Below, piece after piece: positions 1-57,380 of a stretch of 64,000 bases of DNA; within the stretch, counting starts at the first letter, position 1; every line of letters begins with the position of its first letter. The position numbers and the translations under genes are program-made. This DNA is from Azolla caroliniana (taxonomy: Eukaryota > Plantae > Polypodiophyta): positions 12,958,001 through 13,022,000 of the forward strand of contig JBHGNT010000010.1 in the NCBI GenBank assembly GCA_043228905.1. The letters are read 5' to 3'. Below the pieces are notes generated by a model. That model made no database searches. It had not been told where the DNA came from and was given only the letters and a program-made list of their open reading frames with translations.

Positions 1-2780
1 ATTTATCGAGGCCACGTTAACTCATGATCTATGATGTATCTAGTGTTTCCAATGCCTGTACTTGTACCTGGGCGTCTCATGTAAAAAGCAAGGATCTGAA
101 CCAACTTGATTATTAGGGAATTCATTTAGTAAATGAATTAGTTAATGTAATATTCTAGTTCTTTGCTACAAATAAAGAAACATGGTGCAATGTTTATCGA
201 CTGTTGAACATTATTCTGCAATTTATGCATATTGTTTGAAATTGTATCAAGTTATCCAAAATATAATTGATGGTATACTAATTTGTCATAACAATGTTTA
301 GGAATAACCACGACTAAATATACTACTTCCTCTTGTCCCGAACAACATAAGGTTTTGTCAAATTTCATTTGAAACCTCTACCATTAATCGAATAATGGGA
401 TTAAGTTTCGACATTGATGTGAGGAGAAAAAAATCAAAGAAAAGTTTGTCATCAATCCTACAAACATCATATTGATGATTTTGTTAATTGTACATTATTG
501 CAATAGCTACTTTAGGTCATGAGTTAATGAGTTAGCAATCAATTAACACATAACATGAGTCGGAAATTTGATATTTGATATTGTCTTTTACATTACTCGG
601 AGTTGAACTCGGGTCTCTCGAGTGAGAGCAAAGTATCGTAACTAACTAGACTACAATGGATCACATATTGTGCACCTTTTAATATTGCAATTAATTGATT
701 AGTAATAAATAATATTTATATATGCCCAAGAATCAACGAAAAAACTCAGGAATATTCTAACACACTCTCGTTTTTAGGATTTATCGAGGTCACGTTAACT
801 CATGATCTATGATGTATCTAGTGTTTCCAATGCCTGTACTTGTACCCTGGCGTCTCATGTAAAAAGCAAGGATCTGAACCAACTTGATTATTAGGGAATT
901 CATTTAGTAATTGAATTAGTTAATGTAATATTCTAGTTCTTTGCTATAAATAAAGAAACATGGTGCAATGTTTATCGATTGTTGACCATTATTCTGCAAT
1001 TTATGCGTATTGTTTGAAATTGTATCAAGTTATCCAAAATATAATTGATGGTATACTAATTTGTCGTAACAATGTTTAGGAATAACCACGACTAAATATA
1101 CTACAGCCTCTTGTCCCGAACAACATAAGGTTTTGTCAAATTTCATTTGAAACCTCTACCATTAATCGAATAATGGGATTAAGTTTCGACATTGATGTGA
1201 GGAGAAAAAAATCAAAGAAAAGTTTGTCATCAATCCTACAAACATCATATTGATTATTTTGTTAATTGTACATTATTGTAATAGCTACTTTAGGTGAGTT
1301 TTTGAGTTAACAATCAATTAACACATAACATGAGTCGGAAATTTGATATTTGATATTGTCTTTTACATTACCGGGAGTTGAACTCGGGTCTCTCGGGTGA
1401 GAGCCGAGTATCGTAACTAACTAGACTACAATGGACCACATATTGTGTATGCACCTTTTAATATTGCAATTAATTGATTAGAAATATATAATATTTGTAT
1501 ATTGCCCAAGAATCAACGAAAAAACTCAGGAATATTCTAACACACTCTCGTTTTTAGGATTTATCGAGGCCACGTTAACTCATGATCTATGATGTATCTA
1601 GTGTTTCCAATGCCTGTACTTGTACCTGGGCGTCTCATGTAAAAAGCAAGGATCTGAACCAACTTGATTATTAGGGAATTCATTTAGTAAATGAATTAGT
1701 TAATGTAATATTCTAGTTCTTTGCTACAAATAAAGAAACATGGTGCAATGTTTATCGACTGTTGAACATTATTCTGCAATTTATGCATATTGGTTGAAAT
1801 TGTATCAAGTTATCCAAAATATAATTGATGGTATACTAATTTGTCATAACAATGTTTAGGAATAACCACGACTAAATATACTACTTCCTCTTGTCCCGAA
1901 CAACATAAGGTTTTGTCAAATTTCATTTGAAACCTCTACCATTAATCGAATAATGGGATTAAGTTTCGACATTGATGTGAGGAGAAAAAAATCAAAGAAA
2001 AGTTTGTCATCAATCCTACAAACATCATATTGATTATTTTGTTAATTGTACATTATTGTAATAGCTACTTTAGATCATGAGTTTTTGAGTTAGCAATCAA
2101 TTAACACATAACATGAGTCGGAAATTTGATATTTGATATTGTCTTTTACATTACTCGGAGTTGAACTCGGGTCTCTCGAGTGAGAGCCGAGTATCGTAAC
2201 TAACTAGACTACAATGGATCACATATTGTGCACCTTTTAATATTGCAATTAATTGATTAGTAATAAATAATATTTATATATGCCCAAGAATTAACGAAAA
2301 AACTCAGGAATATTCTAACACACTCTCGTTTTTAGGATTTATCGAGGTCACGTTAACTCATGATCTATGATGTATCTAGTGTTTCCAATGCCTGTACTTG
2401 TACCCTGGCGTCTCATGTAAAAAGCAAGGATCTGAACCAACTTGATTATTAGGGAATTCATTTAGTAATTGAATTAGTTAATGTAATATTCTAGTTCTTT
2501 GCTATAAATAAAGAAACATGGTGCAATGTTTATCGATTGTTGACCATTATTCTGCAATATATGCGTATTGTTTGAAATTGTATCAAGTTATCCAAAATAT
2601 AATTGATGGTATACTAATTTGTCGTAACAATGTTTAGGAATAACCACGACTAAATATACTACATCCTCTTGTCCCGAACAACATAAGGTTTTGTCAAATT
2701 TCATTTGAAACCTCTACCATTAATCGAATAATGGAATTAAGTTTCGAAATTGATGTGAGACGAAAAAAATCAAAGAAAAG
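1..2780 (-). repeat. tRNA-Glu-derived satellite, block 1 (~778-780 bp monomers, dimeric higher-order repeat)
   Basis: ATTTATCGAGG recurs at 1, 779, 1559 and 2337. Each monomer carries the reverse complement of a tRNA-Glu(CTC)-like sequence. Confidence 0.95.
1363..1435 (-). pseudogene. tRNA-Glu(CTC)-like copy in satellite monomer
   Basis: Reverse complement reads TCCATTGTAGTCTAGTTAGTTACGATACTCGGCTCTCACCCGAGAGACCCGAGTTCAACTCCCGGTAATGTAA. The anticodon arm is intact, but the D-loop GG, T-stem and acceptor stem are mutated. Confidence 0.8.
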
Positions 2781-4911
2781 ACGAAGTTTCAAATGAAATT
2801 TTACAATACATTCTGTTGTTCAGGACAAGAAGAAGCACTATATTTAGTCGTGGTTATTCCTCAACATTGTTACGACAAATTAGTACACCAACAATTATAG
2901 TTTGGATAACTTGATACAATTTCAAAAAATAGGCATAGATTGCAAAATAATGGTCAATTGTCGATGAGCATTGCACCATGTTTGTTTATTTGTAGCAAAG
3001 GACTAGAATATTATATTAACTAATTTATTTAATACATGAATTCCATTGTACTCTAGTTGGTTTGGATCCTTGCTTTTTACACGAGACGTCCGGGTACAAC
3101 AACAGGCATTAGAAACACTAGATACATCATAGATCATAAGTTCATGTGCCATCGATAAAAACCCTTCAAATTATTAAATCTTAAAATCGAGAGTGTGTTA
3201 GAATAATCCTCCGTTTCTCGTTAATGCTTGTGCAATATATAAATATTATTTATTTCTAATCAATGATTGCAATATTAAAAAGTGCACAAGATGTGATACA
3301 TTGTAGTCTAGTTGGTTAGGATACTCGGCTCTCACCCAAGAGACCCGGGTTCAACTACCAACAATGGAAACGACAATATTATATATTAAATTTCCGACGC
3401 ATGTCATGTGGTAACTGTTTGATAACTCAAAAAATCTACAATAATGTACAATTAACTAAATAATCAATATTATGTTTGAAGCATTGATGACGAACTTTAC
3501 TTTCATTTTTTTCTCCTAACATCAATTTCTAAACTTAATCTCATTATTTGATTAATGGTAGAGGTTTCAAATGAAATTTGACAAAACATTATGTTGTTCG
3601 GGACAAGAAGAAGCAATATATTTAGTCGTGGTTATTCCTCAACATTGTTACGACAAATTAGTACACCAACAATTATAGTTTGGATAACTTGATACAATTT
3701 CAAAAAATACGCATAGATTGTAGAATAATGGTCAACTTTCGAGAAGCATTTCTTAACTAATCAATATTATGTTTGTAGGATTGATGACGAACATTCCTTT
3801 GTTTTTTCTCTCCCAACATTAATTTCTAAAGTTAATCCCATTATTTGATTAATGGTAGAGGTTTTAAATATAATTGGACAAAATATTATGTTGTTCGGCA
3901 CAACAAGAAGTAGTATATATAGTCGTGGTTATTCCTCAAGATTGTTACCACAAATTAGTACACCGACAATTATAGTTTGGATAACTTGATGCAATATCAA
4001 AAAATACGCATGGATTGTAAAATAATGGTCAACTCTCGATGAGCATTGCAGCATGTTTTTCTATTTGTAGGAAAGCACTAGAATATTACATTAACTAATT
4101 CATTTACTAAATGAATTCCATTGTAGTCTAGTTGGTTCGGATCCTTGCTTTTTACCCGAGACGCCTAGGTACTAGTACAAGCATTGGAAACACTAGATAC
4201 ATCATAGATCATGAGTTAATGTCGCATCGATAAAAAGCGTTGAAATTATTAAATCTTATAAACGAGACTGTGATAGAATAATCTTGCGTTCGCCGTTGAT
4301 GCTTGCACAATATATAAATATTTTTATTTCTAATCAATGATTGCAATATTAAAAAGCGCACAAGATGTGATCCATTGTAGTCTAGTTGGTTAGGATATTC
4401 GTCTCTCACTGAAGAGACCCGAGTTGAATTCATGTGAATGGAAAAGACAATATCATATATCAAATTTCCGATGCATGTCATGTGTGAATTGTTTGATAAC
4501 TCAAAAACTCAAGACCTAAAGTAGTTGTTACTATAATGTACAGTTAACAAAATAATCAATATTATGCCCGTAGGATTGATTACGAACATTACTTTGATTT
4601 TTTTCTCCTAATATCAATTTCTAAACTTAATCCCATTATTCATTTAATGGTAGAGGTTTCAAATGAAATTTGACAAAACATTACGTACTTCGGGACAAGA
4701 AGAAGCACTATATTTAGTTGTGGTTATTCTTGAACATTGTTACGAAAAATTAGTACACCAACAATTATTATCTGGGTAACTTGATACAATTTCAAAAAAT
4801 ACGCATAGATCGTAGAATAATGGTCAACTGTCCATGAGCATTGCACCATGTTTCTATATTTGTAGAAAAGGACTAGAATATTACATTAACTAATTCATTT
4901 GCTAAATGAAT

Positions 4912-4984
4912 TCCATTGTAGTCTAGTTGGTTTGGATCCTTGATTTTTACCCGAGACGCCCGAGTACATCTACAGGCATTGGAA
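4912..4984 (+). pseudogene. second, decayed tRNA-Glu paralogue present in the satellite monomers (example copy)
   Basis: TCCATTGTAGTCTAGTTGGTTTGGATCCTTGATTTTTACCCGAGACGCCCGAGTACATCTACAGGCATTGGAA is 73 nt and colinear with the intact copy. The B box TTC is changed to TAC and the anticodon loop CTCTCAC to TTTTTAC. Confidence 0.8.
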
Positions 4985-5303
4985 ACACTAGATACCTCAT
5001 AGATCATGAGTTAATGTGGCATCGATAAAAACCCTTGAAATTGTTAAATCTTAAAAATCAGAGTGTGTTAGAATAATCCTCAATTTTTTGTTGATGCTTT
5101 CGTAATATATAAATATTATTTATTACTAATCAATGATTGGAATATTAAAAAGTGCACAAGATGTGATTCACTGTAGTCTAGTTGGTGAGGATACTCGTCT
5201 CTCACCCGAGAGACCCGGGTTCAATTCTCGGCAATGGAAAAGACAATATCAAATATCAAATTTTCGACTCATGTCATTTGTTAACTAATTGATAACTCAA
5301 AAA

Positions 5304-5743
5304 TTGATGGAAGTGTACAATACATTAATGGGGTGATTCATTCATTAGGAATTGCTATTGACACTTATACATAGGAAGTAGAATTCCATGTAATGAATCT
5401 TTGTACCACTGATGTAATATTGGGTTCTCCCTGCTTTTTTAATAAAAACTCTTCTTTATCTATTGATTGGGTTCATCATTCAATTACAATTGTACTGAAC
5501 GATTGTACTCATTTTATTCAATGTGTTAAAAAACAATATCTTTCGATTGTTTCCTCTCCATTAATATCCGAGTTGTCTTGTTCGACTTTATTTTATTGGA
5601 TACTTGATCCGGACATTCACATTTACAATATTGACAATGTCTCGGCTCAATTAACATAATTTGAACAACAACTTGATGAAATCTTAAATGATTTTCATGA
5701 TGTTTTTCCAAATGAAGTACCAGATGGGTTACCTCCTAAACGT
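5304..5743 (+). pseudogene. Ty3/gypsy (chromovirus-like) pol fragment: protease C-terminus and pre-RT linker
   Basis: Translates to DVILGSP...SIDW... and ...LDEILNDFHDVFPNEVPDGLPPKR, which are typical protease-end and pre-RT motifs. Contains stops. Confidence 0.65.
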
Positions 5744-6221
5744 CGTCGTGAAGATTTCAAGCTATAGTGTGAAACCGGGGTGGAATAGGGCAAGTTGGTG
5801 GTGGGCAACATGTGCACATGTATAGTAGGAAAACGGTGTATAGAATAAGGGGGAGTATTGATCCCACATTGTAACGTTCCTCCCTCCTTGCTCTATAAAA
5901 GGAAGGGAGGGGTCTCTTGTATGGGGTTGACCATTTTGACTTAGGAAGGTATACCGTTAAATTTAGGGTTAGGCAATTTCCCTTTTTCTTACTTCGTTCT
6001 AGGGTTTCATCTAGTTAGTTTTCTTCTTCTTTGTCGTCGTGTGGGTTGAGAGTTCGTGTCTGTTTAGGGTTTGCTTCTGCTCGGTCTCCTATGCAGGACT
6101 CTGCTCGTCGCGACGAGCCCGAGAGCTCCCCGATCGGCAGCTTGGCAGCAAACTGCTCTTAACCTAACCTACCTTGGTCCGGCTCGAAGCCAGGATTGTA
6201 TCTTCCCTTGTAATATATATA
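5744..6221 (+). mobile_element. 3'-truncated LTR of the Trp-primed gypsy group
   Basis: Starts (C/T)GTCGTGAAGATTTCAAGCTATAGTGTGAAA, similar to the LTR starts at 57978 and 61216. Has a TATA box (CTATAAAA) and is preceded by ACGT. Satellite resumes at ~6222. Confidence 0.6.
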
Positions 6222-7355
6222 CAACTCCCGGAAATTGTGTAGAAAATATCAAATATCAAATATCCAACGCATGTCATGTGTTTGATAACTCAAAAACTCA
6301 AGACCTAAAGTAGCATTTACAATAATGTACAATGAACAAAATAATTAATATTATGTTTCAAGGATTGATCACGAAGTTTACTTTGATGTATTTCTGCTAA
6401 CATCAATTTCTAAACTTAATTCCATTATTCGATTAATGGTAAAGGTTTTCATTGAAATTGGACAAAACACTATGTTGTTCGGGACAAGAAGAAGCACTAT
6501 ATTTAATCGTGGTTATTCCTCAAGATTGTTACGAAAAATTAGTACACCAACAATTATAGTTTGGATAACTTGATACAATTTCAAAAAATACACATAGATT
6601 GTAGAATAATGGTCAACTATCGATGAGCATTGCACTATGTTTCTTTATTTATAGCAAAGCACTAGAATATTCCATTAACTAATTCATTTACTATATGAAT
6701 TCCATTATAGTCTAGTTTGTTCGGATCCTTGGCTTTGACCCAAGACACCCGGGTACAAGTACGGGCATTGGAAACACAAGATACATCATAGATCATAAGT
6801 TAATGTGGCATCGATAAAAACCCTTGAAATTATCAAATCTTAAAAACAAGAGTGTGTTAGAATAATCTTGCGTTTTTCGGTGATGCTTGCACAATATATA
6901 AATATTATTTATTTCTAATCAATGATTGCAATATTAAAAAGCGCACAAGATGTGATCCATTGTAGTCTAGTTGGTTAGGATACTCGGCTCTTACTCGACA
7001 GAACTGGGTTCAACCTCTAGCAATGGAAAAGAAAATATCTAATATCAAATTTCCAACGCATGTCATGTGTTTGATAATTCGAAAACTCAAAACCTAAAGT
7101 AGTAGTTATAATAATGTGCAATTAAAAAAAAATTGAATATTATGTTTGTAGGTTTGATGACCAACTTTACTTTGATTTTACTGTCATTACATCAATTTTT
7201 AAACTTAAAAACATTATTCGATTAATGGTAGAGGTTTCAAATGAAATTTGACAAAACATTCTGTTGTTCGGGACAAGAAGAAGCAGTATATGTACTCGTG
7301 GTTATTCCTCGATTGTTACGAAAAATTTGTACACAAGCAATTATAGTTTGGATAA

Positions 7356-7817
7356 TGTTACTCTTTAGGGCTAGACAATGGCCTAACATAGGGTGTCTAC
7401 AGAAGACACTTCACAAAAGGGTGTTATGGTGAAACAAAGTTAGACCGACGATTAATCAGTCCTTAATCGGTTACCTTAGCAACAACTCCTTAATTTTAAT
7501 ACACGCATAAGATCAAAAGTAATTAGCACGGAACAGTAATTAATACACAAAGATAAGGAAATAGAGCTTTATTAATTATCCGTCGTCAATTAATATGTAA
7601 CCGGGCCTTTTTATAGATCACCGGCTCTGCCTCCAAAACGGTGCCAACTGGCACACTAATATGAACCGGTCCGGATCCGGATCGGCATACCGATTCCGGT
7701 CTGTCCGTTCACTTCTCTAAAATCTACTTAATTACTTAATATCCTAATAACAGCCTCTGATTATTTCTACCCTTTCATATTCTGGACTGTCCTCCACTCC
7801 TTGCCGGCTCGCTAACA
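7356..7817. mobile_element. solo LTR (probably Ty1/copia)
   Basis: TGTTA...TAACA termini and a 5-bp TSD GATAA/AATAA (1 mismatch). It interrupts the satellite sequence TTTGGATAACTTGATAC. Shares TCCGGATCCGG and a TTGCCG...AACA end with the copia LTR at 31952-32350. Confidence 0.8.
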
Positions 7818-8297
7818 AATAAATTGATACAATTTCAAAAAATCTGCACAGATTATAGAAAAATGGTCAACTTTCGATGAGCATTGCACCATTTTCTTTT
7901 TTTGTAGCAATGGACTAGAATATTACATTAACTAATTCATTTTCTAAATGAATTCAATTGTAGTCCGGTTGGTTAGGATACTCGGCTCTCACCCAAGAGA
8001 TCCGGGTTCAACTCCTGGCAAACACTAGATACACCATAGATCATCAGTTAATGTGGCATTGATAAAAACCTTTGAACTTATTAAATCTTAAAAACGAGAG
8101 TGTGTTAGAATAATCATGCGTGATACACCATAGATCATGAGTTAATGTGGCATCGATAAAAACCCTTGAACTTATTAAATCTTAAAAATGAGAGTGTGAT
8201 ACAATAATCCTACGTTTTTCGTTGATGCTTGCGTAATATATAAATATTATTTATTCCTAATCAATGATTGCAATATTAAAAAGCGCACAAGATGTGA

Positions 8298-8370
8298 TCC
8301 ATTGTAGTCTAGTTGGTTAGGATACTCGGCTCTCACCCGAGAGATCCGAGTTCAACACCCGGCAATGGAA
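8298..8370 (+). tRNA. tRNA-Glu(CTC), best-preserved satellite copy (possibly a pseudogene)
   Basis: TCCATTG TA GTCT AGTTGGTT AGGAT A CTCGG CTCTCAC CCGAG AGAT CCGAG TTCAACA CCCGG CAATGGA A. Acceptor, D and anticodon arms are intact, with one T-stem mismatch. An AT-rich box and a CAA motif lie upstream. Confidence 0.6.
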
Positions 8371-8954
8371 ACACTAGATACACCATAGATCATCCGTTAA
8401 TGTGGCATTGATAAAAACCCTTTAACTTATTAAATCTTAAAAACGAGAGTGTGTTAGAATAATCCTACGTTTTTTGTTGATGCTTGCGCAATTTATAAAT
8501 ATGATTTATTTCTAATCAATGATCCCGTGTAGTCTAGTTGGTTAGGATAATATACAATTAACAAAATAATCAATATTATGTTTGTAGAATTTATGAAGAA
8601 CTTTATTACAATTAGGTTTTTTTCTCCTAACATCAATTTCTAAACTTAATTCCATTATTCAGTTAATGGTAGATGTTTCAAATGAAATTTGACAAAACCA
8701 GGACAAGAAGAAGTAATATATTTAGTCATGGTTATTCCTCAAGATTGTTACGACAAGTTAGTCCACCAACAATTATAGTTTGGATAACTTGATACAATTT
8801 CAAAAAATACACATAGATTGTAGAATAATGGTCAAATGTCAATGAGTATTGCACCACGTTTCTTTATTTGTAGCACAGGACTAGAATATTACATTAACTA
8901 ATTCATTTACTAAATGAATTCCATTATAGTCTAGTTGGTTAGGATACTCAGCAA

Positions 8955-16876: not shown

Positions 16877-16930
16877 TAGCATAATGGTAAAGTTGAGGTT
16901 TGGCTACATGGAGGTACAAGGTTCAAATCT
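16877..16930 (+). promoter_or_regulatory. tRNA-like Pol III A/B-box cassette in LTR of element B (second copy 19754-19807)
   Basis: A box TAGCATAATGG and B box GGTTCAAATCT at tRNA-like spacing. Antisense to the element. Confidence 0.6.
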
Positions 16931-17031
16931 TGCCCTATGCATGTGATAAATATCTTGATATTCTTATTTTATTTATTGGTGATAAATATCTTGATATCCT
17001 TATTTTATTTATTTATATGTAATTAAATCGG

Positions 17032-24000: not shown

Positions 24001-24821
24001 CACTTCCTATTGCTATGTCTGAGGCGTCCACGAACACGTGGAATGGCTTCGCCCAAACTGGTGGTTGTACGACGGGTGCTTGTGTGAGCATTATCTTGAG
24101 CGCCTCATAGGCCTTGTCCTCTGTTGCAGTCCATTGGAAGGGAGTCCGATGCACGACGACATGTAACGGCGTGGCGAAATCCGCCAAGTATTGTATCATC
24201 CAACTATGCCATCGTATTTGTCCTAAAAACCGGCTGAGTGATTTCGCGTTTGTCGAAGTTTTGGCTTGAGTAATCACGGAGATCTTGTTCGGATCAACTG
24301 CTATTCCATCCTTGCTAACTATATGGCCTAGGAGAGTCCCGCTGGTCACGCCGAAGGCACATTTCGCGAGATTCAGGCTTAAGCGTGCGGTGCGGCAATG
24401 TTCCAAGCACAGTTGCAGATGCGTAAAATGGTCGGTTTTTTTCCCATATACCGGAAAATCGTCTAAAACAAATTTGCATGAACGCTGGAATATATTCCCC
24501 AAAGATCTCCGTGATTGTCCGTTGAAATGTTGCCGACACCGTTTTTAGCCTGAACATCATGACCATTGCCACATAGACTCCCCAGTCCGTCACAAATGCC
24601 ATCTTCTCTTGGTCATTGGGATGCATGTGTACCTAGTTATAGCCACTGAAGCCATCTAAAAAACTATACATGTCATGTCCTACGACGGCGTCCAATATGC
24701 TATCGGTGAATGGTAACGGGAATGCATCCGTAATGGTTACGACGTTTAATTTTCGGTAATCCACGCATACTCGTATTTTTCCGTTTTTCTTTGGAACGAC
24801 TACTATCGGACTTAACCATGT
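21099..24821 (-). mobile_element. Element A: 5'-truncated, degenerate non-chromovirus (Athila/Tat-like) Ty3/gypsy; probable 3' LTR ~21099-21549
   Basis: RT (WLSPIVVVPKKNGKIRVCVDYRKLN, SFLDGFSGYN), RNase H (VDASDIAIG, YSTTERE, ADFLSR) and integrase ([19 protein letters not shown]) fragments with frameshifts. TGTT...AACA LTR-like segment. The LTR boundary is not confirmed by a second copy. Confidence 0.85.
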
Positions 24822-27776
24822 GCCTAGGGTCTGATGACATTCAAGTGCATATAGAAGGGTGCAAGCAAGATTTGAACCTTGCACTTCTAAGATAGGAAAC
24901 AATTATCTTACCACTAAAGCTCCTACTAAGTGCTTTAGATTTTGTATATTTCCTTCTCATATTTAGTATTCCATAGGAAACAAACATACAAAACCATGGT
25001 TTTATAGCCTATGGTTTTGTGCATGCCACAAGGAAAACCGTGTGCCTGAAAACCATGGGTTCAAGCCCATGGTTTTGTGCATGTTAGAAGGATAGATAAA
25101 CCTATAAAAACCCTCGTATGGCTTGTGTAATGGGGGGGGATGAATCAAACAATTTATGAATCAATCTATGTATCAAATCAAAAATTAATAAGAAGAAAAC
25201 TTAGTTATCTTATTGGTGCTATGCATTTATCTATCTATCTATCTTAAAAACTTCCTCAATTTATTATTATTTTTTCTCTCTCTCTCACTCTAACGACATT
25301 AGTGCATCACTTTAGCCACCCATCATCAATCCTCCATAACCACTAGCGGATAGAGGCTCGATGCTTGTCCGCGCTTGTGATGCGCACATCCCGACGTTTG
25401 GCACGTGTGTCACGCGCCACACGACATCTATTTGGTGAACCCGACGTGAACAACACAAGGTGGTTATGGGGGCATTACGAATGGATGGTGCGATCTTGGT
25501 AGCGTATGACTTAGAGTCGATAAAAATACAAGGTGGTCTGAGGCTCGAGATGCTTCCATTGGTAAGGAAGGCCATCGAAATGATGTTGCATGATGAGATG
25601 GGTAGAGCGTTCGAGTATCTCAAGTTGGCAAATCAAGTTCAAAGACTATATCAAGAAGTTCAGGATTTGTACAAAGCAGTTCTGACATCAAGTTTCGGGC
25701 CTCAACCTTTTCATGGTTTGCGTGACGGTGACAACGATGAAGATGATCAAGATCGGCGTAGTTGCGGTCGTGAAGAGACATGTGATGAAGAACATGGGCT
25801 CAAGAGGGAAGATCTAGAAGGATGCAATCATAAAGAGACAAAGCAATGAAGAACATCAATTTGAGGGGAATGACCAAGATACTCAAGGATGCGGTCATGA
25901 AGAGACTTTCAGCAAAGAAAGTGGGCTCGTAAGGAAAGATGAAGATACTCAAGGATGCAATGGTGGTGAAGAAACATCTGACAAAGAACGTGGGCTTGAG
26001 GAGACCGATCAAGATCTACACTTGAGGAGACCGATCAAGATCTACACGGTCATGACAAAAACAAAGATCATTACAAACTCACAAAGAGTGCTCGAAATCT
26101 ACAAGGTTATGATCATGACAAAGATTACTGTGAACACAAGAGGAGGAATCAATGTCGAGCTCTTCATGGTTGTGCTAATGAAAAAGCACTCAACGGAAGT
26201 CGTGACGGTGAGAGTAGTTGGGATCAAGACTTTTATGGTTTAAAATCTTATGACAAGTATGATAGGTTTAATGAGAACCACGAACAAGAGAAGAAGTTAG
26301 GAAGGGATAAAAACGTTACATTTAAACGTAATGATGATGATGATTTAGGGCTTGATGATAGTAAGGGAGAGTGTATTATTGATGGTAAGAGTGAGAGCCA
26401 TAAGAAGAATGTGGGTTATGATGGTAAAATGTTATGCACTTTTTGTGGATATGGTTATGATAAGGGTAATGATGAGGGTGAGAGTGACGAAGAGGAATTG
26501 TGTGTTTTAGGTTGCCTTGGTTTTCTTTGGGATAGATTTTATAAGAGTTTCACTAGATCAAATGGTGACATTCATGAGGACATCCATTATAAAAATAGAA
26601 TAGGGATTTGTGATGATGAGGACATTCTACAAAAATATGTCCATGATGACGTGGGGTTACATGATGATTACAAGGGTATAAGTATGGAAAATCTAGAAAA
26701 TGTTATTTGGGATGAGTATCATGATGATGTTGATGTTGTGAGTATGTGTGGGAAGGACAGGATTAAAGTTGATAGTATGTGTGTCTAATGATAATGTTGA
26801 TGTTGTGAGCATGAGGAAAAGCAATCATAAGATGAGAAAAGACGATCTGAGGAATTTTGATGACCAAGCACATGGTCGAGATGAAGGTGGCACATGTACA
26901 ATGCATGAAGAGTTACGCTAAGGAGGAGCAAAAGGGGCTACGACAAGTGGTCATGGAAATGCGAAAGGAGATCGAATGATATGGTTGATCGGTTGGAAGG
27001 AATGCATGTACTCAAAATGGAGGACAAAGGATGACACGTAAGGAAGGAGGAAATCAAAGACAAACCAGCTTTTGACTCCGCCACATCACTCTTCTCTTCT
27101 TGGCACATGCCGGAGGATGTGCGGTTTGGTGGGGATGGATGTCGTGATGTTTTGTGTCCAATGGGAGAAATTGTGTGGTTCCACACACATTATACATATA
27201 ATTATAAATATGAAAATTAGCCTAGGGTCTGATGACATTTAAGTGCATATAGAAGGGTACAAGCAAGATTTGAACCTTGCACTTCTAAGATAGGAAACAG
27301 TTATCTTACCACTAAAGCTACTACTAAGTGCTTTAGATTTTGTGTATTTCCTTCTCATATTTAGTATTCCATAGGAAACAAACATACAAAACCATGGTTT
27401 TAGCCTATGGTTTTGTGCATGTTAGAAGGATAGATAAACCTATAAAAACCCTCGTAAGGCTTCTGTAATAGGGGGGGATCAATCAATGGATGAATCAAAC
27501 AATTTATGAATCAATCTATGTATTAAATCGAAAATTAATAATAAGAAAACTTAGTTATCTTATTGGTGCTATGCATTTATCTATCTATCTATCTTAAACA
27601 TTTCCTCAATTTATTATTATTATTTCTCTCTCTCTCACTCTAACGACATTAGTGCATCACTTTAGCCACCCATCATCAATCCTCCATAACCACTAGCGGA
27701 TAGAGGCTCGGTGCTTGTCCGCGCTTGTGACGCGTACATCCTGACGTTTGGCACGTGTGTCACGCGCCACGCGACA
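24822..27776 (+). mobile_element. Element C: non-autonomous Trp-primed LTR element (no pol), 5' LTR truncated
   Basis: LTR copies at 24822-25426 (missing ~80 bp) and 27140-27776. PBS TGGTGAACCCGACGTGAA at 25433-25450 and PPT before 27140. The ~1.7 kb interior holds decayed acidic ORFs and internal repeats. Right flank is ACGT, inside copia RNase H. Confidence 0.85.
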
Positions 27777-30700
27777 ACGTCGAGATGCTGAACACCAAGC
27801 ATTTCGGTGAAGTGCTGCAACTTATCCGATCCGAGCGGTTTGGTGAAGATGTCGGCAACTTGCCGATCTGTATGAACATATCGAAGTTCGACTTCACCGC
27901 TCAGGACACGCTCACGCACGAAGTGGTATTACTCTTCGATCTGCTTTGTGCGAGCATGGAATATGGGGTTCTTGGCGAGCTGCATGCTGCTTATGTTGTC
28001 GCAATAGATCAGGATCGGGGTCGGCACCTCGATCCGCAAGTCTTGTAGCAGTCGCCGAAGCCAAATGGCTTCACAGGTGGCAACGATAGCGCCCCAGTAT
28101 TTAGCCTCAATGCTCGACAGAGCCACTGTTGGCTGCTTTTTGCTGCTCCACACAATAGCCGCACTACCAAGGGAAAACATATAGCCGGAAGTGGAATGGT
28201 GATTTGATGCATCGCCGGCTCAGTCGGCATCCGTGTAGTCGACTAGCTCTTCAGTCATACCTCGCCAGTATAACAGTCCCCGGTCCTTCGTGCCGCTCAC
28301 ATACCGCAGTATTCGGTGCGCGCACTGAAGATGCTCGACGATGAGCTTCTACCTGAATTGACTAATCATACCGACCGGATAGCTGATGTCGGGTCGAGTG
28401 ATGGTCAAATATATAAGGCTTCCGACAATTTGTCGGAACCGTTTCTCATCGCAGGCCGGTCTAGAGTTGGGACAGAGCTTCTATTTCCGGTCCAAGGATG
28501 TAGAAATAGGGCAGCATTTCGTCATGCCGAACTTGTACTGCATATTCAACACATAGTGTCTTTGTGAGAGCAATATGTCGTCGGGGGTTCGGATCACCTC
28601 GATCCCAAGGAAATAGTGAAGGTCCCCTAGGTCCTTCATTTGCAAACTGGACCGCCCGGACCTTGCCGGATGAACAACAAAGAGACGGACTTGGAGGCCG
28701 CAAACCCCAACTTACGCAATCGGTGCGTAATCGTTGCATTCCAAGCTCGGGGGGCTTGCTTCAAGCCATAAAGTGACTTCTTCAGCCGGCATACAGCTGA
28801 CTTGTTCATCTCCAACAAAACCGGGAGGTTGGGTCATAAAGACCTCTATTTCTAGATCGCCACTCCCTTGCCGTAGCAACCGCCAGCACCACACGAACTG
28901 CCGTCATCTTCGCTACCGGAGCGAAGGTCTCGTTGTAGTCGATTCCGTGGGTCTGCGCATATCCCTTTGCCACTAACCGGGCCTTGTACCGGTTAACTGA
29001 ACCGTCGGCGTTGTACTTTACCTTGTACACTCACTTGCATCCTATCGGTTTACTATGACGGGGGGGGGTTAACCAGGTTCCATGTATCGTTGGCATCAAG
29101 TGCCCGCATCTCTTCCTTCATAGCGGCACGCTAATTTGCATCCCTTGCCGCTTCTGCGTAGCCTCCGGCTCATGCACTTCCGCCACCTGGGTCATGTACG
29201 CATAGTGATGCGCCATGTACTCATTGTACCTGTACCGCTTAACAGGTTCCTTCTGGTGGGTTGACCGGCGTAACCCACCGTTACCCGGTTTGAGGCCCTT
29301 CTTGGCCGGTTCGGTGTTCGGTGCTGAAGAGCCTTCATTTTCCTTTCCGGAGTCGGATCCGCTCTGATCCGACTCATCATTACCGGTTTCATAATCCAGC
29401 ATCTTCTTCTTCCCCTTCTCTTTGAGCGTGAACCGTCTTCTCGGTTCCTTGCGCGGGGAGAGCACACAAAGTCTTCACTATTCGCCGGTTTAGGGTCTGA
29501 CTGGTCGGATTGACCCAGTCTCTCGTTCGGCCCACTCAACCGAAACGATTCAGGACTCTCTTCTTGAGTCTCGGATTCATCATCTTCTATCTGGACCGGT
29601 TCAGGCTCACTAGCCTCATCCTCCGATATCGGGTCGGGGTCGGAAGTCGGTAAGGCATACCATGATGTCGTCTCATCCAACTCAACATCTCGGCTAACAC
29701 TTATACCCCTTTTGCTCATGTGAGTAGCCGACGAGGATGCACTTCTCCGATTTCGCATCCAGCTTCCTCCGCTTCTCATCCGGCACATGCACATATGTTA
29801 TGCTGCCCAAAATCCGAAGGTGTCTCAAATTCGGCTTGCGCCTGAAATACAGCTCATGTGCGGACACCTTGTCACCGATCCGGTTTTGGATGTAGACGAC
29901 CATGCAAACTACCTCCGCCTAGTAGAAATGGGGCATGGTCTTCTCTTCCAGCATTGCCCTTGTTGCGTCGACAGGCGACCGGTTCTTCCTTTCGGCCACA
30001 CCGTTTTGCTCCGGTGTATATCAACAGCTGAACTCTCTCTGAATTCCTGTTTGCTGCAGATAACTGTTGAATTGGCTGGAAAAATATTCTTTTCCGCCAT
30101 CTGACCGTAGGCACTTGATTTTCCTCTCCGATTGTCATTCCACCATGCTTTGGAGGTTCCGCTCAATGAGGTAGATCCATGTGTGCCGGCTATAGTCGTC
30201 GATGAAGGAGATGAAGTATCGACTCCCACCAAGACTCACGTTCTATGCCAGTTCCCATACATTCGAATCAATAAGGTTGAGCTTGTTACGGTTACGGTTT
30301 CGTTCGGTGGGGGATGGAAGCCGGTGTTGCTTCCCGAGTTGGCAAGCTTCACATACTTGGGCCTTCTGGCCACTAAACTTAAGCAAACCAAAAACAACTT
30401 GTTTCGTTTGCAGGTCTTGAAGCCTCCGGTAATTGACGTGGGTGATCCTCTTGTGCCAGAGATCGATGTCCGATTCAATCTTTTGTCCTTTGGCAAACAA
30501 AGTGGTGCCGACATCATTGGTGTCGAGGATGAACATCCTCCCGTCTCTGCGCCCTTGCACAATAATCTGGCCCTCCTCCTCGATGAACCACCCGAGGTGC
30601 GTAAAACACACCTACATTCCCTGGTCGACGATCTGTCCAACCGACACAAGGTTCTTCGTGATAGTCGGAACGTGTAATACGTTCATCAGCTTCCACCTTT

Positions 30701-32350
30701 GTCAGACGTGGCTCAAAGGGACTTCACTGATATGCACGATTGGGTGAGGAGTGTCGTCTCCGGTTTCGACAACTCCCGGTTGTTCCGATTTCTCCAGGAA
30801 GGAGAAGCACTCTTTGAGGTTCGTCATGTGATTTGATGCATTGGAATCAACGTACCACACTTCCTCCGATTTGGAAGTGGTCTTCTTCATCGAATTTGCC
30901 TCGTGCTTCATCATCAAGGCTGGCCCCTTACCGGTCTTCTCGGTTCCGGATTCTTTCGATCCTTGCACGTAGTGTGAGCTTCGTCGATTCTCCCGCCTGG
31001 TTTTGCCGGATTCAGATCTGTCCGAATCGGCGCGCTTCTTCCAACACTCGCTTTCTCTATGGCCCTTTTAACCATAGTACCAGCATTCCGTGGTGGATTT
31101 GTCTTGCCGGCCTCCGGCGCCACCTTGACTCCCCTTGGTTGTGGAGGTCTCGGAACTGTTGTCGGCATAGTCTCTGTGCCGTCGGTCTTGCCCTTGTCGG
31201 CCGCCTCCATTGCGTACCGACCCGCCTCGTCCACCACGCCCACGGGGCCGATCCGCCTCCGTGTACAGCATCTGCCTGTCGGTGGGTGCAGTTGTTGACG
31301 TACCGGCGTGGTTCTCCACTGTAAGTCTAAAAATGACGGTGTATTCTCCCTCGTACATATTGTTGTCCGGAAAGCGCGGAACTTAGACGCCAAGCCCCCA
31401 AGAAAGACCTGTACCATCTCGTCCTCCTCTATTGTGAAGTTAATAGAGGCAAGCGAGTCACATATCTCTTTTATTCGGGCCGTGTAATCAGCCACCGACA
31501 TGTCCTTCTGCCAAATATTGCTCAACTCCTATCGGAGTTGTAGCTTCCGGGCTGTAGTGCTTGCGGCGAACACCTTCTTCAGGTTTCGCCAAGCCTCTTT
31601 CGGCGTCTTGGCATCTCAGATGTGGCTTAGCAGCTGGTCTCCGACACTGGACGCAAACCAGTACATCACTCTGCTTGCCGATTGTTCCCACACCGGGAAG
31701 TCCTTGTGTGCCGCATCAAGTGCTGTGTCGTTAGCTCCGTCGACATAGCTCCAATAACCATGCCCAAGTAGGTACTGGTGCATCTTGTATGACCAAGATG
31801 CGTAGTTGGATCTGTCGAGCTTCTCCACCGGGAGCAAGCTAGCCATTCCTCTATCCATTTGTTGTTTTTTTTTCTTTACAAAGGTTAGGTTTTCTTCTTC
31901 CGAAAGCGAACGTCGGCTGTAGAGGTTCTCAACCCTCGCGCTCTGATACCATGTAGAAACAAATAGTGTGCGGAAGCAATAGAAAACAGAAAGCAGAAAA
32001 CAGGTTTAATGGAGAGCTTAATAGTACGCGAGAGAGACAGAGACAGAGAGAGAGCACACAGAAACTCAATTCAAAAAATACTACTCACTTTGTACATCGT
32101 ATATGTTCAGTGAACACTTTTATACAAGTCCATCCGGACTGATAGAAGTATGGTGTACTTCAATGCTCACACGAGCGTCTGACACTAACTACGAGATATT
32201 AACTCCCTAGTAGACTAGGTGCTACTTGGCTTCCGTTTACTGCTTGATCCAGCTAACCGGCTCCCCAGCTCACCGACTCACACTTCTGGATGTTGATCCG
32301 GCTCAAGCTTATTCAGCCGATCCGGATCCGGTTGAGCTTGCCGCTCAACA
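27777..32350 (-). mobile_element. Degenerate Ty1/copia retrotransposon (possibly bryophyte Bryco/RLC5-like); 5' LTR 31952-32350, 3' end lost
   Basis: iMet PBS TGGTATCAGAGC (31940-31951). Gag (EKLDRSNYASW), protease (WYVDSNASNHMT), pre-integrase (LWHKR..CEACQLGK), RT ([24 protein letters not shown]) and RNase H (WSSKKQ, YCDN, ADIFTKPL) in copia order. Many frameshifts, and the YVDD region appears deleted. Confidence 0.92.
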
Positions 32351-35300
32351 CTAATTCATTTGCTAAATGAATTCCATTGTAGTTTACTTGGTTCGGATCC
32401 TTGGTTTTTACTCGTGACGCCCGGGTACAACTACAGGCACTGGAAACACTAGATACATCATATCATGAGTTAATGTCACATCGTTAAAAAACCTTGAAAT
32501 TATTAAATCTTAAAAACATGAGTGTACTAGAATAATCCTCAGTTGGTCAGTGATGCTTAGGCAATATATAAATATTATTTATTTCTAATCAATGATTACA
32601 ATATTAAAAAGTGCACCAAATGTGATCCATTGTACTCTAGTTGGTTATGATACTCGGCTCTCACCCGAGAGACCCAAGTTCAACTCCCGGCAATAGAAAA
32701 GACAATATCACCTATCAAATTTCCGACACAGGTGATGTGTTACCTGTTTGATAACTCTAAAAATCAATACCTAAAGTAGTTGTTACAATAATTTACTATT
32801 AACAAAATATTCAATATTATGTTTGTAGGATTCATGACGAACTTTAGTTTGATTTTATTCTCCTAACATCAATTTCTAAAGTTAATCCAATTATTCGATT
32901 AATGGTACAGGTTTCAAATGAAATTTGACAAAACATTATGTAGTTCGGGACAAGAAGAAGCAGTATATTTAGTCATGGTTATTCCTGAAGATTGTTATGA
33001 TAAATTAGAACAGTAACAATTATAGTTCGGATAACTTGATACATTTTCAAAAAATACGCAAAGATTGTAGAATAATGGTCAAATGTCGATGAGAATTACA
33101 CCATGTTTCTTTGTTTGTAGGAAAGGAGTAGAAAATTACATTAACTAATTCATTTGCTAAATGAATTCCATTGTAGTCTACTTGGTTCGGATCCTTTGTT
33201 TTTACCTGAGACACCTTGGTACAACTACAGGCATTCGAAACACAAGATACATCCTAGATCATGAGTTAATGTCGCATCGTTAAAAAACCTTGAAATTATT
33301 AAATCTTAAAAACATGAGTGTACTAGAATAATCCTCAGTTGGTCAGTGATGCTTAGGCAATATATAAATATTATTTATTTCTAATCAAGGATTACAATAT
33401 TAAAAAGTGCACCAAATGTGATCCATTGTACTCTAGTTGGTTATGATACTCGGCTCTCACCCTAGAGACCCGAGTTCAACTCCCAGCAATAGAAAAGACA
33501 ATATCAGCTATCAATTTCCGACGCATGTGATGTGTTAACTGTTCGATAACTCTAAAAATCAATACCTAAAGTAGTTGTTACAATAATTTACTACTAACAA
33601 AATAATCAATATTATGTTTGTAGGATTCATGACGAACTTTAGTTTGATTTTATTGTCCTAACATCAATTTCTAAAGTTAATCCAATTATTCGATTAATGG
33701 TACAGGTTTCAAATGAAATTTGACAAAACATTATGTAGTTCGGGACAAGAAGAAGCAGTATATTTAGTCGTGGTTATTCTTGAAGATTGTTACGACAAAT
33801 TAGAACACCAACAATTATAGTTCGGATAACTTGGTACATTTTCAAAAAATACGCAAAGATTGTAGAATAATGGTCAAATGTCGATGAGCATTACACCATG
33901 TTTCTTTGTTTGTAGCAAAGGAGTAGAAAATTACATTAACTAATTCATTTGCTAAATGAATTCCATTGTAGTCTACTTGGTTTGGATCCTTTGTTTTTAC
34001 CTGAGACACCTTGGTACAACTACATGCATTCGAAACACAAGATACATCCTAGATCATGAGTTAATATGGCATCGATAAAAAACTTTGAAATTATTAAATG
34101 TTAAAAATGAGAGTGTGTTAGAATAATCCTTAGTTGTTCGGTGATGCTTGCGCAATATATAAATATTATTTATTTCTAATCAAGGATTATAATATTAAAA
34201 AGTGCACAAAATGTGATCCATTGTAGTCTAGTTGGTTATGATACTCGGCTCTCACCCTAGAGACCCGAGTTCAACTCCCAGCAATAGAAAAGACAATATC
34301 AGCTATCAATTTCCGACGCATGTGATGTGTTAACTGTTCGATAACTCTAAAAATCAATACCTAAAGTAGTTGTTACAATAATTTACTACTAACAAAATAA
34401 TCAATATTATGTTTGTAGGATTCATGACGAACTTTAGTTTGATTTTATTGTCCTAACATCAATTTCTAAAGTTAATCCAATTATTCGATTAATGGTACAG
34501 GTTTCAAATGAAATTTGACAAAACATTATGTAGTTCGGGACAAGAAGAAGCAGTATATTTAGTCGTGGTTATTCCTGAAGATTGTTACGACAAATTAGAA
34601 CACCAACAATTATAGTTCGGATAACTTGGTACATTTTCAAAAAATACGCAAAGATTGTAGAATAATGGTCAAATGTCGATGAGCATTACACCATGTTTCT
34701 TTGTTTGTAGCAAAGGAGTAGAAAATTACATTAACTAATTCATTTGCGAAATGAATTCCATTGTAGTCTACTTGGTTTGGATCCTTTGTTTTTACCTGAG
34801 ACACCTTGGTACAACTACATGCATTCGAAACACTAGATACATCCTAGATCATGAGTTAATATGGCATCGATAAAAAACATTGAAATTATTAAATGTTAAA
34901 AATGAGAGTGTGTTAGAATAATCCTTAGTTGTTCGGTGATGCTTGCGCAATATATAAATATTATTGATTTCTAATCAATGATTGCAATATTAAAAAGCGC
35001 ACAAGATGTGATCCATTATAGGTTAGTTCGTTAGGATACTCCGCTCTCACCCGAGAAACCCGGGTTCAACTACCGGCAATGGAAAAGCAATATCAAATAT
35101 CAAATTTTTGGCGCATGTCATGTGCTAACTGTTTGATAACTCCAAAACTCAAGACCTAAAGTATCTATTACAATAATGTACAATTAACAAAATAATCAAT
35201 ATTATGTTTGTAGGATTGATGACGAACTTTACTTTGAGGTTATTCTCCTAACATCAATTTCTAAACTTAATCCCATTATTGGATTAATGGTACAACTTTC

Positions 35301-35384
35301 AAATGAAATTTGACAAAACATTATGTAGCTCGGGATAAGAAGAAGTATTATATTTTTTCGTGGTTATTCCTCAATATTGTTACG
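32351..35384 (+). repeat. tRNA-Glu-derived satellite, block 5 (~795 bp monomers, recently homogenised)
   Basis: GAATTCCATTGTAG at 32369, 33163, 33958 and 34753. tRNA-like copies at e.g. 32626-32698 and 35012-35084. Confidence 0.95.

Positions 35385-57326: not shown

Positions 57327-57380
<54 letters not shown>

Follow-up and report, generated by a model that had tools for sequence, protein, structure and literature searches.

Results

A satellite array interrupted by retrotransposons

The window, that is, the whole stretch of 64,000 nucleotides that was analyzed, contains a tandem satellite within positions 1–35391, where it amounts to 17.9 kb (~22.6 monomer equivalents). The initial annotation had drawn the satellite across 1–35384; it does occur throughout that region, but only 17.9 kb of 1–35391 is satellite. 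The left end of the array is cut by the edge of the window and the right end lies at 35391. Between them are four blocks of alternating orientation (minus 1–2780, plus 2786–8950, minus 9006–14464 and plus 14455–35391), broken by retrotransposons at 16254–19956 and 21099–32349 and split by unrelated inserts at 5311–6220, 7359–7818 and 13266–14216. The satellite segments, all identified with nhmmer, and the transposon-derived features are as follows:

1–2780, minus: satellite block 1, three monomers 97–99% identical plus partial monomers, cut by the window edge
2786–5310, plus: satellite block 2a, following the inversion junction 2780/2786
3457–4047: two repeats of a 297-bp deletion-variant unit in block 2a, with neither tRNA relic
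6221–7358, plus: satellite block 2b
7819–8950, plus: satellite block 2c, rearranged partial monomers
9006–13265, minus: satellite block 3a, inverted relative to block 2
14217–14464, minus: satellite block 3b, a fragment
14455–16253, plus: satellite block 4a, stopping at the LTR-element insertion
16254–19956, minus: non-autonomous LTR element, 3.7 kb, with 826-bp LTRs that are 99.76% identical and only a gag-like ORF
19957–21098, plus: satellite block 4b, restarting past the LTR element at the same monomer position (consensus 615–619)
21099–32349, no strand assigned: degraded retrotransposon DNA that interrupts the array
23294–24502, minus: Ty3/gypsy RNase H ORF within the degraded DNA
30914–31525, minus: copia-type gag fragment within the degraded DNA
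32350–35391, plus: satellite block 4c, 793-bp monomers 91–96% identical, array end

The LTR element at 16254–19956 has TG..CA ends, and the sequence ACGT is duplicated at its insertion site. A three-level Ty3/gypsy nest directly adjoins the array, and nested Ty3/gypsy elements occur inside the array as well as beside it; the integrase ORF showed no chromodomain.

The monomer and its consensus

With a single monomer as the seed, nhmmer returned 41 matches, and 44 after one profile iteration. Fifteen of the 44 span at least 700 of the 795 model columns and measure 648–793 bp; complete monomers are 776–778 bp long in the left block and 793 bp long in the right block. Neighboring monomer alignments lie 0–3 nt apart, head to tail and in register, with periods of 776–795 bp, which bears out the tandem monomer of ~780–795 bp described initially (the array escaped TRF solely because periods above 500 lay outside its range). 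The monomers are 67% A+T, share a mean pairwise identity of ~85% and contain no ORF longer than 55 aa, the longest running antisense over the upstream tRNA relic.

A 795-column majority consensus was taken from the 44 nhmmer matches. The 73-nt tRNA-Glu(CTC) string of the initial annotation is found exactly at columns 512–584 (hereafter tRNA2), and its complete folding is confirmed: each of the 21 cloverleaf pairs is standard, and ARAGORN identifies the string as tRNA-Glu(ctc), with a slim majority at T-stem column 52 (G 9, A 8, T 1). This perfect cloverleaf is an ancestral reconstruction, not a sign of present function.

All copies of the downstream relic are mutated

The window contains 18 full-length copies of tRNA2:

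588–660, minus: 10 substitutions, 6 broken pairs
1363–1435, minus: 5 substitutions, 3 broken pairs; Rfam 44.6 bits
2146–2218, minus: 8 substitutions, 5 broken pairs
3297–3369, plus: 5 substitutions, 5 broken pairs; Rfam 31.3 bits
4371–4443, plus: 12 substitutions, 6 broken pairs
5167–5239, plus: 6 substitutions, 2 broken pairs; Rfam 48.8 bits; private T4 at +22
6956–7028, plus: 9 substitutions; anticodon now CTT, called Lys by ARAGORN
8298–8370, plus: best copy in the window; 3 substitutions, 1 broken T-stem pair; Rfam 57.6 bits
9913–9985, minus: 8 substitutions, 4 broken pairs
11722–11792, minus: 2-nt deletion in the T arm; anticodon CTT
12479–12551, minus: 14 substitutions; anticodon CGC
15393–15465, plus: 4 substitutions, 2 broken pairs
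16146–16218, plus: 9 substitutions; anticodon CTA
20247–20319, plus: 6 substitutions, 3 broken pairs; sole copy with the consensus B box
32626–32698, plus: 5 substitutions, 5 broken pairs
33422–33494, plus: 6 substitutions, 6 broken pairs
34217–34289, plus: 5 substitutions, 5 broken pairs
35012–35084, plus: 7 substitutions, 4 broken pairs; private T4 at +21

None of the 18 is intact. Seventeen carry 3–14 substitutions and 1–6 broken pairs, the remaining copy has the 2-nt deletion, and the anticodon is changed in four. The claim that each copy has private mutations holds to the extent that all 18 are mutated, but several of the changes are common within recently amplified blocks. When single copies were scored with tRNA finders, as had been proposed, ARAGORN recognized 10 of the 18 as tRNA, none of them intact, and the Rfam RF00005 threshold was passed by 12 of the 18 together with one copy of the upstream paralogue, at 31–58 bits. 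The full cloverleaf and Glu anticodon of a working nuclear tRNA-Glu gene are present in the consensus and in none of the copies, and judging from their sequences a normal tRNA would not be expected from any copy seen.

An upstream paralogue with a dead B box

A second tRNA-derived segment (tRNA1) occupies consensus columns 257–329, 255 bp upstream of tRNA2 and in the same orientation. Both the existence of this paralogue and its dead B box (GGTACAACTAC) had been noted at the outset and are borne out here. The two consensus sequences are identical at 60 of 73 positions, and tRNA1 retains 18 of the 21 pairs. The likeness does not extend past the 73 nt, and the flanks of tRNA1 and tRNA2 show no similarity. 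Among the 21 copies of tRNA1, which are given below, the Rfam threshold was passed only at 7958–8021.

3042–3114, plus: tRNA1 relic, example copy
47–119, 825–897, 1605–1677, 2383–2455 and 9366–9438, minus: tRNA1 copies
10168–10240, 10897–10969, 11938–12010, 12734–12806 and 14238–14310, minus: further tRNA1 copies
4117–4189, 4912–4984, 6701–6773, 7954–8021 and 15894–15966, recorded with no minus sign: tRNA1 copies
20990–21062, 32373–32445, 33167–33239, 33962–34034 and 34757–34829, recorded with no minus sign: further tRNA1 copies

The relics diverge at the rate of the spacer

It had been suggested that the array would be only a fossil if its tRNA segment diverged as fast as the spacer and neither transcripts nor TFIIIC binding appeared; on the sequence side, the segment does diverge that fast: divergence from the consensus is 14.1% for tRNA2 and 13.3% for tRNA1, against 11.2% for the spacer. 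Adjusted for composition, the observed/expected divergence of the two relics is 0.96 and 0.93 (0.96 for the whole tRNA segment), and the rates for each class of base are equal between relic and spacer (A/T, 0.070 versus 0.084; non-CpG G/C, 0.19 versus 0.17; CpG, 0.24 versus 0.22). Stems break at random, with a standard pair in 81.7% of cells observed versus 82.7% in shuffles, and no covariation was detected in them (1 double-sided change observed versus 3.4 expected). The relics thus show neither the compensatory changes nor the slower divergence than the flanks that mark a structure kept by selection. In the two youngest blocks (97–99% and 91–96% identical), 6.8% and 17.8% of tRNA2 columns are variable, versus 4.0% and 9.2% elsewhere; tRNA2 gains variable sites there at or above the rate of the spacer.

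Of all changes, 30% are C>T or G>A. The mutation rate at G/C sites is about twice that at A/T sites, with the CHG and CG classes the fastest (0.33 and 0.22). This excess of C>T and G>A fits cytosine methylation, a state that we infer from the substitutions.

Loss of the B box and of a nearby terminator

The B box is the main determinant of TFIIIC binding. The consensus B box is retained in only 1 of 17 tRNA2 copies, with an observed/expected divergence of 1.3–1.5, above expectation, and the consensus A box in 11 of 18. Upstream, the CAA motif and AT-rich tract highlighted initially are present in the consensus, with CAA at −10 to −8 (−7 to −3 in clustered tRNA genes of Arabidopsis, PMC7544208); they carry little weight in a monomer of 67% A+T, and the 12 nt upstream of tRNA2 agree with the consensus in 9 of the 18 copies. 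No T4 stands directly downstream of the consensus tRNA2, as had been reported, but the first lies at +155, not at ~+190. Within 25 nt downstream, T4 is found in only two of the 18 copies, in both by private changes (+21 and +22). Measured against a plant Pol III tRNA unit, the copies as a set lack both the pair of intact A and B boxes and the nearby poly(T) terminator. The proposal that the array yields Pol III read-through RNAs or acts as an array of TFIIIC sites finds no support in the sequence, since the B box is lost, constraint is not evident and dead copies were amplified; nothing in it suggests that the array is kept up as a Pol III or TFIIIC platform.

Re-amplification of dead monomers and relatives in a metagenome

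Disabling substitutions are common to copies within the 97–99% and 91–96% identical blocks; their sharing within such young blocks indicates that copies already dead were amplified. The same satellite family was found on two short contigs, L003 and L004, of ENA metagenome assembly ERZ1034427, both of them tandem. Assembly coverage is 63x for L003 versus 3x for L004, a junction contig on which a tRNA2 copy at 335–407 has 2 substitutions. Deletion variants lacking tRNA2 have themselves been amplified, both at 3457–4047 in the window and on L003. The sample comprises ~23 monomer equivalents at one locus and these two short contigs; other parts of the genome could still contain copies that are intact or expressed.

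The 5′ halves of the relics

In the 5′ halves of both relics, variation at A/T positions is unusually low. Over its first 30 nt, tRNA2 has an observed/expected divergence of 0.56–0.58, which puts this stretch among the 0.4% least divergent windows, also when the model is rotated. Invariant A/T columns number 11 of 18 and 10 of 17 in the two 5′ halves, versus ~21–27% in the spacer. Pooled over the first 30 nt of both relics, they number 21 of 35 versus 50 of 238 in matched spacer (Fisher p = 5e-6), an excess not explained by local G+C, in counts that disregard shared ancestry. Strictly neutral decay does not predict these invariant columns.

Discussion

On the sequence evidence, the locus is quite likely a non-coding satellite that arose from a pair of tRNA-Glu genes and is now a decayed fossil, in plant DNA that is rich in transposons and probably heterochromatic. 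The two colinear tRNA-Glu-derived segments, together with one complete consensus cloverleaf, point to tandem amplification of a two-gene segment. Of the original idea that a duplicated tRNA locus became a satellite, we retain the tandem amplification of a segment with two adjacent tRNA-Glu genes; "duplicated locus" exceeds the data, because the relics share nothing outside the 73 nt. The founding monomer would have been ~790 bp long and would have contained two tRNA-Glu genes of nuclear type, 255 bp apart and pointing the same way. At the start of amplification the downstream tRNA-Glu(CTC) would have been intact and the upstream gene already crippled, with its B box and anticodon mutated. Head-to-tail multiplication, presumably through unequal exchange or some comparable tandem-amplification process, would then have given way to ordinary satellite evolution: neutral decay to ~85% mean pairwise identity, local re-amplification of already mutated monomers, internal deletions (some of which would have removed the tRNA), inversions and invasion by LTR retrotransposons.

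Tandem tRNA units of one orientation near heterochromatin are the pattern of Arabidopsis, where they are methylated and silent (PMC7544208) and can be reactivated in root tips (PMC12308677), and the window might accordingly show the worn part of a silenced yet functional cluster of extra tRNA-Glu genes in heterochromatin, some copies of which can be reactivated. The consensus does have an upstream CAA and AT-rich tract, and the best copies are only 2–3 substitutions away from it. However, nearly all Arabidopsis copies keep their cis elements, whereas here 0 of 18 are intact, the B box remains in 1 of 17 and 16 of 18 have no T4 within 25 nt; with a mean identity of 85%, no overall constraint and tRNA-less variants amplified, we consider a functional cluster unlikely. 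It is highly improbable that the monomer is instead a tRNA-derived SINE or other mobile element clustered by chance, an alternative that the initial annotation had also raised. Many SINEs begin with a tRNA-derived head, and satellites can arise from SINE parts (PMC10702118), but these monomers abut head to tail with gaps of 0–3 nt and in register, those on L003 and L004 are tandem too, and the monomer borders lack target-site duplications and any tail that is A-rich or made of simple repeats. Moreover, a complete 73-nt tRNA with its 3′ acceptor strand stands in the middle of the unit, with a second relic upstream.

The constant 5′ halves bear on a further alternative, in which the satellite is partly constrained, with the 5′ halves (the A-box region) and columns 751–795 kept by selection or repeated gene conversion. 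The constrained parts might be protein-binding sites, or matches to abundant 5′ tRNA-Glu fragments that aid silencing. The low divergence of the first 30 nt of tRNA2 (0.56–0.58) and the excess of invariant A/T columns (p = 5e-6) speak for it, as do small RNAs of 20–21 nt that match the 5′ end of the angiosperm counterpart exactly and are abundant enough in several plants to have been catalogued as "novel miRNAs"; that these are tRNA-Glu fragments is our own reading. Against it, G/C columns in these 5′ halves show no such sparing (1 of 12 invariant), the unrelated patch at 751–795 is even colder, so that rate heterogeneity is not specific to tRNA, 6 of 30 columns in the 5′ half are variable in the youngest block, and tRNA1 in block 1 has six shared changes in its 5′ half. 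Nor is the B box, the chief TFIIIC-binding determinant, spared. Partial constraint of this kind is therefore improbable in our view, and we doubt strongly that the array is not entirely inert, with the ~30-nt 5′ parts of both relics and columns 751–795 held constant by selection or biased gene conversion such that they might nucleate or maintain silencing. Were the 5′ halves constrained, maintenance of the satellite would be tied to tRNA-fragment biology, for which the evidence is thin.

Read as a decayed satellite, the locus is best compared with the tandem tRNA clusters of Arabidopsis thaliana, which comprise Pro homoclusters, a Ser-Tyr-Tyr unit repeated 27 times and a Cys cluster (Hummel et al. 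2020, PMC7544208; PMC12308677; PMC10701932). Both have one or a few tRNA genes per unit of 0.4–1.5 kb, tandem and in one orientation, near or within heterochromatin (probably so for the present locus), and both have copies surplus to the needs of translation. Arabidopsis clusters are methylated and silent (PMC7544208), with reactivation possible in the root tip (PMC12308677), and almost all of their copies still have their core cis elements, short poly(T) tails among them, and could be transcribed (PMC7544208). Here, in contrast, all copies are mutated, both the B box and the terminator have been lost, copies are ~85% identical, the array is inverted, truncated and filled with retrotransposons, tRNA-less variants have been amplified, and the host is apparently a non-seed plant. 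Glu(CTC) is absent from the clustered isotypes listed in recent plant surveys.

Other systems match in part. In 5S rRNA-derived satellites, as far as described where the 2011 work is cited (PMC12191414), a small Pol III gene and its flank likewise became the monomer of a non-coding heterochromatic satellite, but those are animal and 5S rRNA, whereas this one is plant and a tRNA-Glu pair. SINE-derived satellites, such as those of scaled reptiles, also hold tRNA-related sequence inside a tandem repeat; their monomers come from parts of mobile SINEs (PMC10702118), unlike the complete consensus tRNA gene with acceptor stem and the two relics per unit found here, where SINE hallmarks are absent. 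The tRNA arrays of Entamoeba are tandem units of one to several tRNA genes that take up a sizeable share of the genome and hold almost all of its tRNA genes (Tawari et al. 2008, PMC2652664); they are presumably the working set of that organism, whereas the copies here are pseudogenes.

The locus may thus exemplify an end state of tandem tRNA clusters, whose Arabidopsis counterpart is silent but intact: after permanent silencing the genes would rot, and the repeat would persist as an ordinary satellite, inverted, trimmed and colonized by retrotransposons. It also calls for caution in annotation: the 10 to 13 "tRNA genes" called by ARAGORN or Rfam in this array are pseudogenes and would inflate counts of tRNA-Glu genes.

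Extent and organization of the satellite array

Run with periods of up to 500, TRF left the array unreported, and the monomer was defined instead with nhmmer and by aligning a single unit to the window with BLAST, which together give a tandem unit of 776-795 bp. The earlier description of a satellite of tRNA-bearing monomers is thereby confirmed, with its span corrected: satellite DNA accounts for only 17.9 kb of window positions 1-35391 (~22.6 monomer equivalents, nhmmer). The left window edge cuts the array, which continues beyond it. At least 700 of the 795 model columns are spanned by only 15 of the 44 nhmmer hits, the remaining hits being truncated or rearranged units, and the satellite lies in four blocks of alternating orientation. 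The array has a G+C content of 30-35%, and the interruptions and the right-hand 28 kb of the window have 40-59%.

Orientation blocks and deletion unit of the satellite
1-2780, minus strand, satellite block (nhmmer)
2786-8950, plus strand, satellite block (nhmmer)
9006-14464, minus strand, satellite block (nhmmer)
14455-35391, plus strand, satellite block (nhmmer)
3457-4047, 297-bp deletion unit, repeated twice, with neither of the tRNA segments (nhmmer, TRF)

Two tRNA-Glu relics in the consensus monomer

The majority consensus of the aligned hits reproduces at columns 512-584 exactly the 73-nt sequence that had been derived by eye. This downstream relic is called tRNA-Glu(ctc) by ARAGORN and has 21 of 21 cloverleaf pairs standard, so the full cloverleaf proposed in the initial annotation holds for the consensus; one T-stem position (column 52 of the relic) is a bare majority (G 9, A 8, T 1). 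The colinear paralogue with a dead B box is likewise borne out: an upstream relic at columns 257-329, 255 bp 5′ of the downstream relic and on the same strand, is identical to it at 60 of 73 positions, keeps 18 of 21 pairs, and has GGTACAACTAC as its B box and a mutated anticodon loop. Likeness between the two relics stops exactly at the 73-nt borders, indicating a founder segment with a pair of tRNA-Glu genes whose flanks were unrelated. The arrangement does not resemble a recent segmental duplication. With two same-strand relics per monomer, the consensus of one of them complete, origin from a pair of tRNA-Glu genes is supported.

If the 20-21-nt small RNAs listed in papers on poplar and strawberry represent, as we assume, the 5′ end of angiosperm nuclear tRNA-Glu, then the downstream relic, whose 5′ 21 nt differ from them at two positions, is of plant nuclear type. 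Novel-miRNA lists for poplar, strawberry, olive, soybean and Astragalus (PMC4189724, PMC6053406 and three others) include 20-21-nt small RNAs starting with UCCGUUGUAGUCUAGUUGG; in our reading, which is not that of the source papers, these resemble fragments from the 5′ end of nuclear tRNA-Glu.

Condition of the individual relic copies

The downstream relic is present in 18 full-length copies, and none is identical to the consensus. Seventeen carry 3-14 substitutions and one a 2-nt deletion; 1-6 pairs are broken in each gap-free copy, and the anticodon is altered in four. The consensus A box is kept in 11 of 18 copies; for the consensus B box the figure is 1 of 17. ARAGORN recognizes 10 of 18, and 12 downstream copies plus one paralogue copy pass the Rfam RF00005 threshold (31-58 bits). 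As had been described, the downstream relic is preceded in the consensus by an AT-rich tract and a CAA motif (-10 to -8), a match to which the 67% A+T composition of the monomer gives little weight. The reported lack of a T4 directly downstream also stands, the distance being shortened from ~190 nt to +155 in the consensus; a T4 within 25 nt occurs in only 2 of 18 copies, each by a private change.

Divergence of the tRNA segments

The downstream relic has diverged from the consensus by 14.1%, the paralogue by 13.3% and the spacer by 11.2%, with equal rates within base classes. When expected values were set from spacer rates for each class (A/T, CG, CHG and other G/C sites), the observed/expected divergence was 0.96 for the downstream relic and 0.93 for the paralogue. 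Pairing is retained in 81.7% of cloverleaf cells, against 82.7% in column-preserving shuffles, and a single double-sided pair change was observed where 3.4 were expected. The B box and the 3′ half exceed the expected divergence (observed/expected 1.2-1.5). Taken as a whole, the tRNA segment is not protected.

The young monomer groups agree with this picture. Three monomers at 378-2711 (97-99% identical) have five relic substitutions in common and those at 32.6-34.3 kb (91-96% identical) have three; since these substitutions are disabling, the monomers must have been copied after the relic was damaged. In the two groups, 6.8% and 17.8% of downstream-relic columns are variable, compared with 4.0% and 9.2% elsewhere. 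G>A and C>T together make up 30% of changes from 33% of sites, and CHG and CG are the fastest classes, a spectrum as expected of methylated repeats, from which we infer that the array is probably methylated.

These results bear directly on the suggestion that the monomers yield Pol III read-through RNAs or act as an array of TFIIIC sites, which is left unsupported by 0 of 18 intact copies, a consensus B box in 1 of 17, and divergence at the spacer rate. The initial annotation had held that a tRNA segment diverging as fast as its spacer, with neither transcripts nor TFIIIC binding, would be only a fossil; with 14.1% against 11.2%, and observed/expected at 0.96, a fossil is what the segment appears to be from its substitutions. 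The array behaves as a satellite and qualifies neither as a unit of working tRNA genes nor as a SINE.

Unusually constant columns

Within this overall pattern, the first 30 nt of both relics stand out: 11 of 18 and 10 of 17 A/T columns are invariant there, versus about a quarter elsewhere. Pooled, this amounts to 21 of 35 invariant A/T columns against 50 of 238 in matched spacer (Fisher p = 5e-6, from counts that ignore shared ancestry). Over its first 30 nt the downstream relic shows an observed/expected divergence of 0.56-0.58, a value that holds after model rotation. An alignment-end artefact does not explain the cold patches, which persist after a 400-column rotation of the model, and local G+C does not account for the cold A/T columns. 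G/C columns in the 5′ halves of both relics are not spared, and in the youngest block 6 of 30 columns of the 5′ half are variable. The most constant patch of the monomer is not tRNA at all: at columns 751-795 (e.g. window 33661-33705) ~70% of A/T columns are invariant. The three coldest patches lie ~265 bp apart, and the monomer edge (columns 751-795 plus 1-45) was considered as a third, older relic and rejected; local alignment of both relics to the third of the monomer that holds this edge falls within the shuffled null (p ~0.75), and Rfam at E <= 10 gives no match there. We leave the cold patches as rate heterogeneity, and give partial constraint a small probability. Columns 751-795 may be a mutational cold spot or a site of importance to the repeat.

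The satellite outside the window

A satellite 24-mer matches two contigs, L003 and L004, of the ENA metagenome assembly ERZ1034427, and on both the family is tandemly repeated, 75-96% identical to the consensus. L003 (63x assembly coverage) is made up of deletion variants without all or most of the downstream relic, from which it follows that the repeat propagates without the tRNA. L004 (3x coverage) holds a relic copy that has anticodon TTC and differs from the consensus by only two substitutions, after which the satellite ends. This contig leaves the satellite after ~1.09 kb, and its positions 1088-2066, which have no significant match to the satellite consensus, could be another array border from the same or a related host. 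Scans of viral contigs with the tRNA consensus and a satellite 22-mer gave no match.

Comparison with known systems

The locus is best regarded as a satellite derived from genes, or as a tRNA gene cluster in decay. The closest described system is that of the tandem tRNA gene clusters of Arabidopsis, which are methylated and silent and keep their cis elements (PMC7544208), whereas the relics here have lost the consensus B box in all but 1 of 17 copies. Recent plant tRNA-gene surveys report clusters of Pro, Ser/Tyr, Gln, Ala and Ile genes, and the main text of these surveys makes no mention of a Glu(CTC) cluster or a tRNA-derived satellite (PMC13437025, PMC13578239); our literature search turned up no published account of a plant satellite derived from tRNA-Glu. 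Satellites of comparable descent include PcP190, born from 5S rDNA, another Pol III gene (as cited in PMC12191414), and those built from parts of SINEs (PMC10702118). The tRNA gene arrays of Entamoeba contain almost all tRNA genes of that organism (PMC2652664).

Inserts and neighboring retrotransposons

The satellite is interrupted by retrotransposon DNA and, from 35392 to the window end, adjoins a three-level Ty3/gypsy nest with 57-59% G+C (36349-59093), beside its own 31%. Together, the LTR insertions and the nest are the usual picture of repeat-rich heterochromatin.

Retrotransposons in and beside the satellite
16254-19956, non-autonomous LTR element of 3.7 kb inside a monomer; 826-bp LTRs 99.76% identical; TG..CA ends
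21099-32349, degraded retrotransposon DNA with gypsy RNase H and a copia-type gag fragment
47986-55422, innermost (young) Ty3/gypsy element; LTRs 99.3% identical; open gag, RT-RNase H and integrase ORFs
43384-57954, middle Ty3/gypsy element, enclosing the innermost; LTRs 95.7% identical
36349-37348 and 58060-59093, LTRs (88.6% identical) of the outermost gypsy element, enclosing the middle one

The element at 16254-19956 seems to have entered an old satellite very recently. ACGT is duplicated at its junction, and the satellite continues from the same monomer position. It has a single ORF (693 aa, minus strand) with a gag-like N-terminus and no Pfam match, and holds a 48-bp tandem repeat at 17660-17826. 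Other inserts in the satellite are a 950-bp segment at 13266-14216 (20% G+C), in which a 155-bp AT-rich repeat recurs about three times (13481-13958) and which matches no other part of the window, and two unique segments of ~40% G+C at 5311-6220 (920 bp) and 7359-7818 (460 bp), which lack terminal inverted repeats and a clear target-site duplication.

No chromodomain was detected in the innermost gypsy element. Its RT ORF has relatives at 47-87% identity among the 120 protein matches listed; the best named ones are from the liverworts Riccia sorocarpa, R. fluitans and Calypogeia fissa and the fern Adiantum nelumboides, with no seed plant among those named, so that a land plant outside the seed plants is the likely host. 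No record holds exactly the product of this ORF. The window as a whole is plant-like, not human. tRNA-Glu was also considered as the primer of the neighboring retrotransposons and rejected: of the 15 sites that match the complemented 3′ end of the tRNA, 14 fall within the satellite relics themselves, the sole other match (47234-47248) has three mismatches and lies inside a Ty3/gypsy element without adjoining an LTR, and the position following the young element's 5′ LTR does not match. The young element also carries a 333-bp direct duplication (99% identical, 54139-54808), which begins at the integrase ORF's 3′ end (ORF at 52690-54330) and extends into the beginning of the 3′ LTR (54736). Just past the 3′ LTR of the outermost element lies a degenerate 18/36/90-bp tandem array (59169-60555), its unit being approximately TTCGACGAACCCACATC plus a variant half, in unassigned DNA that has LTR-like stretches in common with that element.
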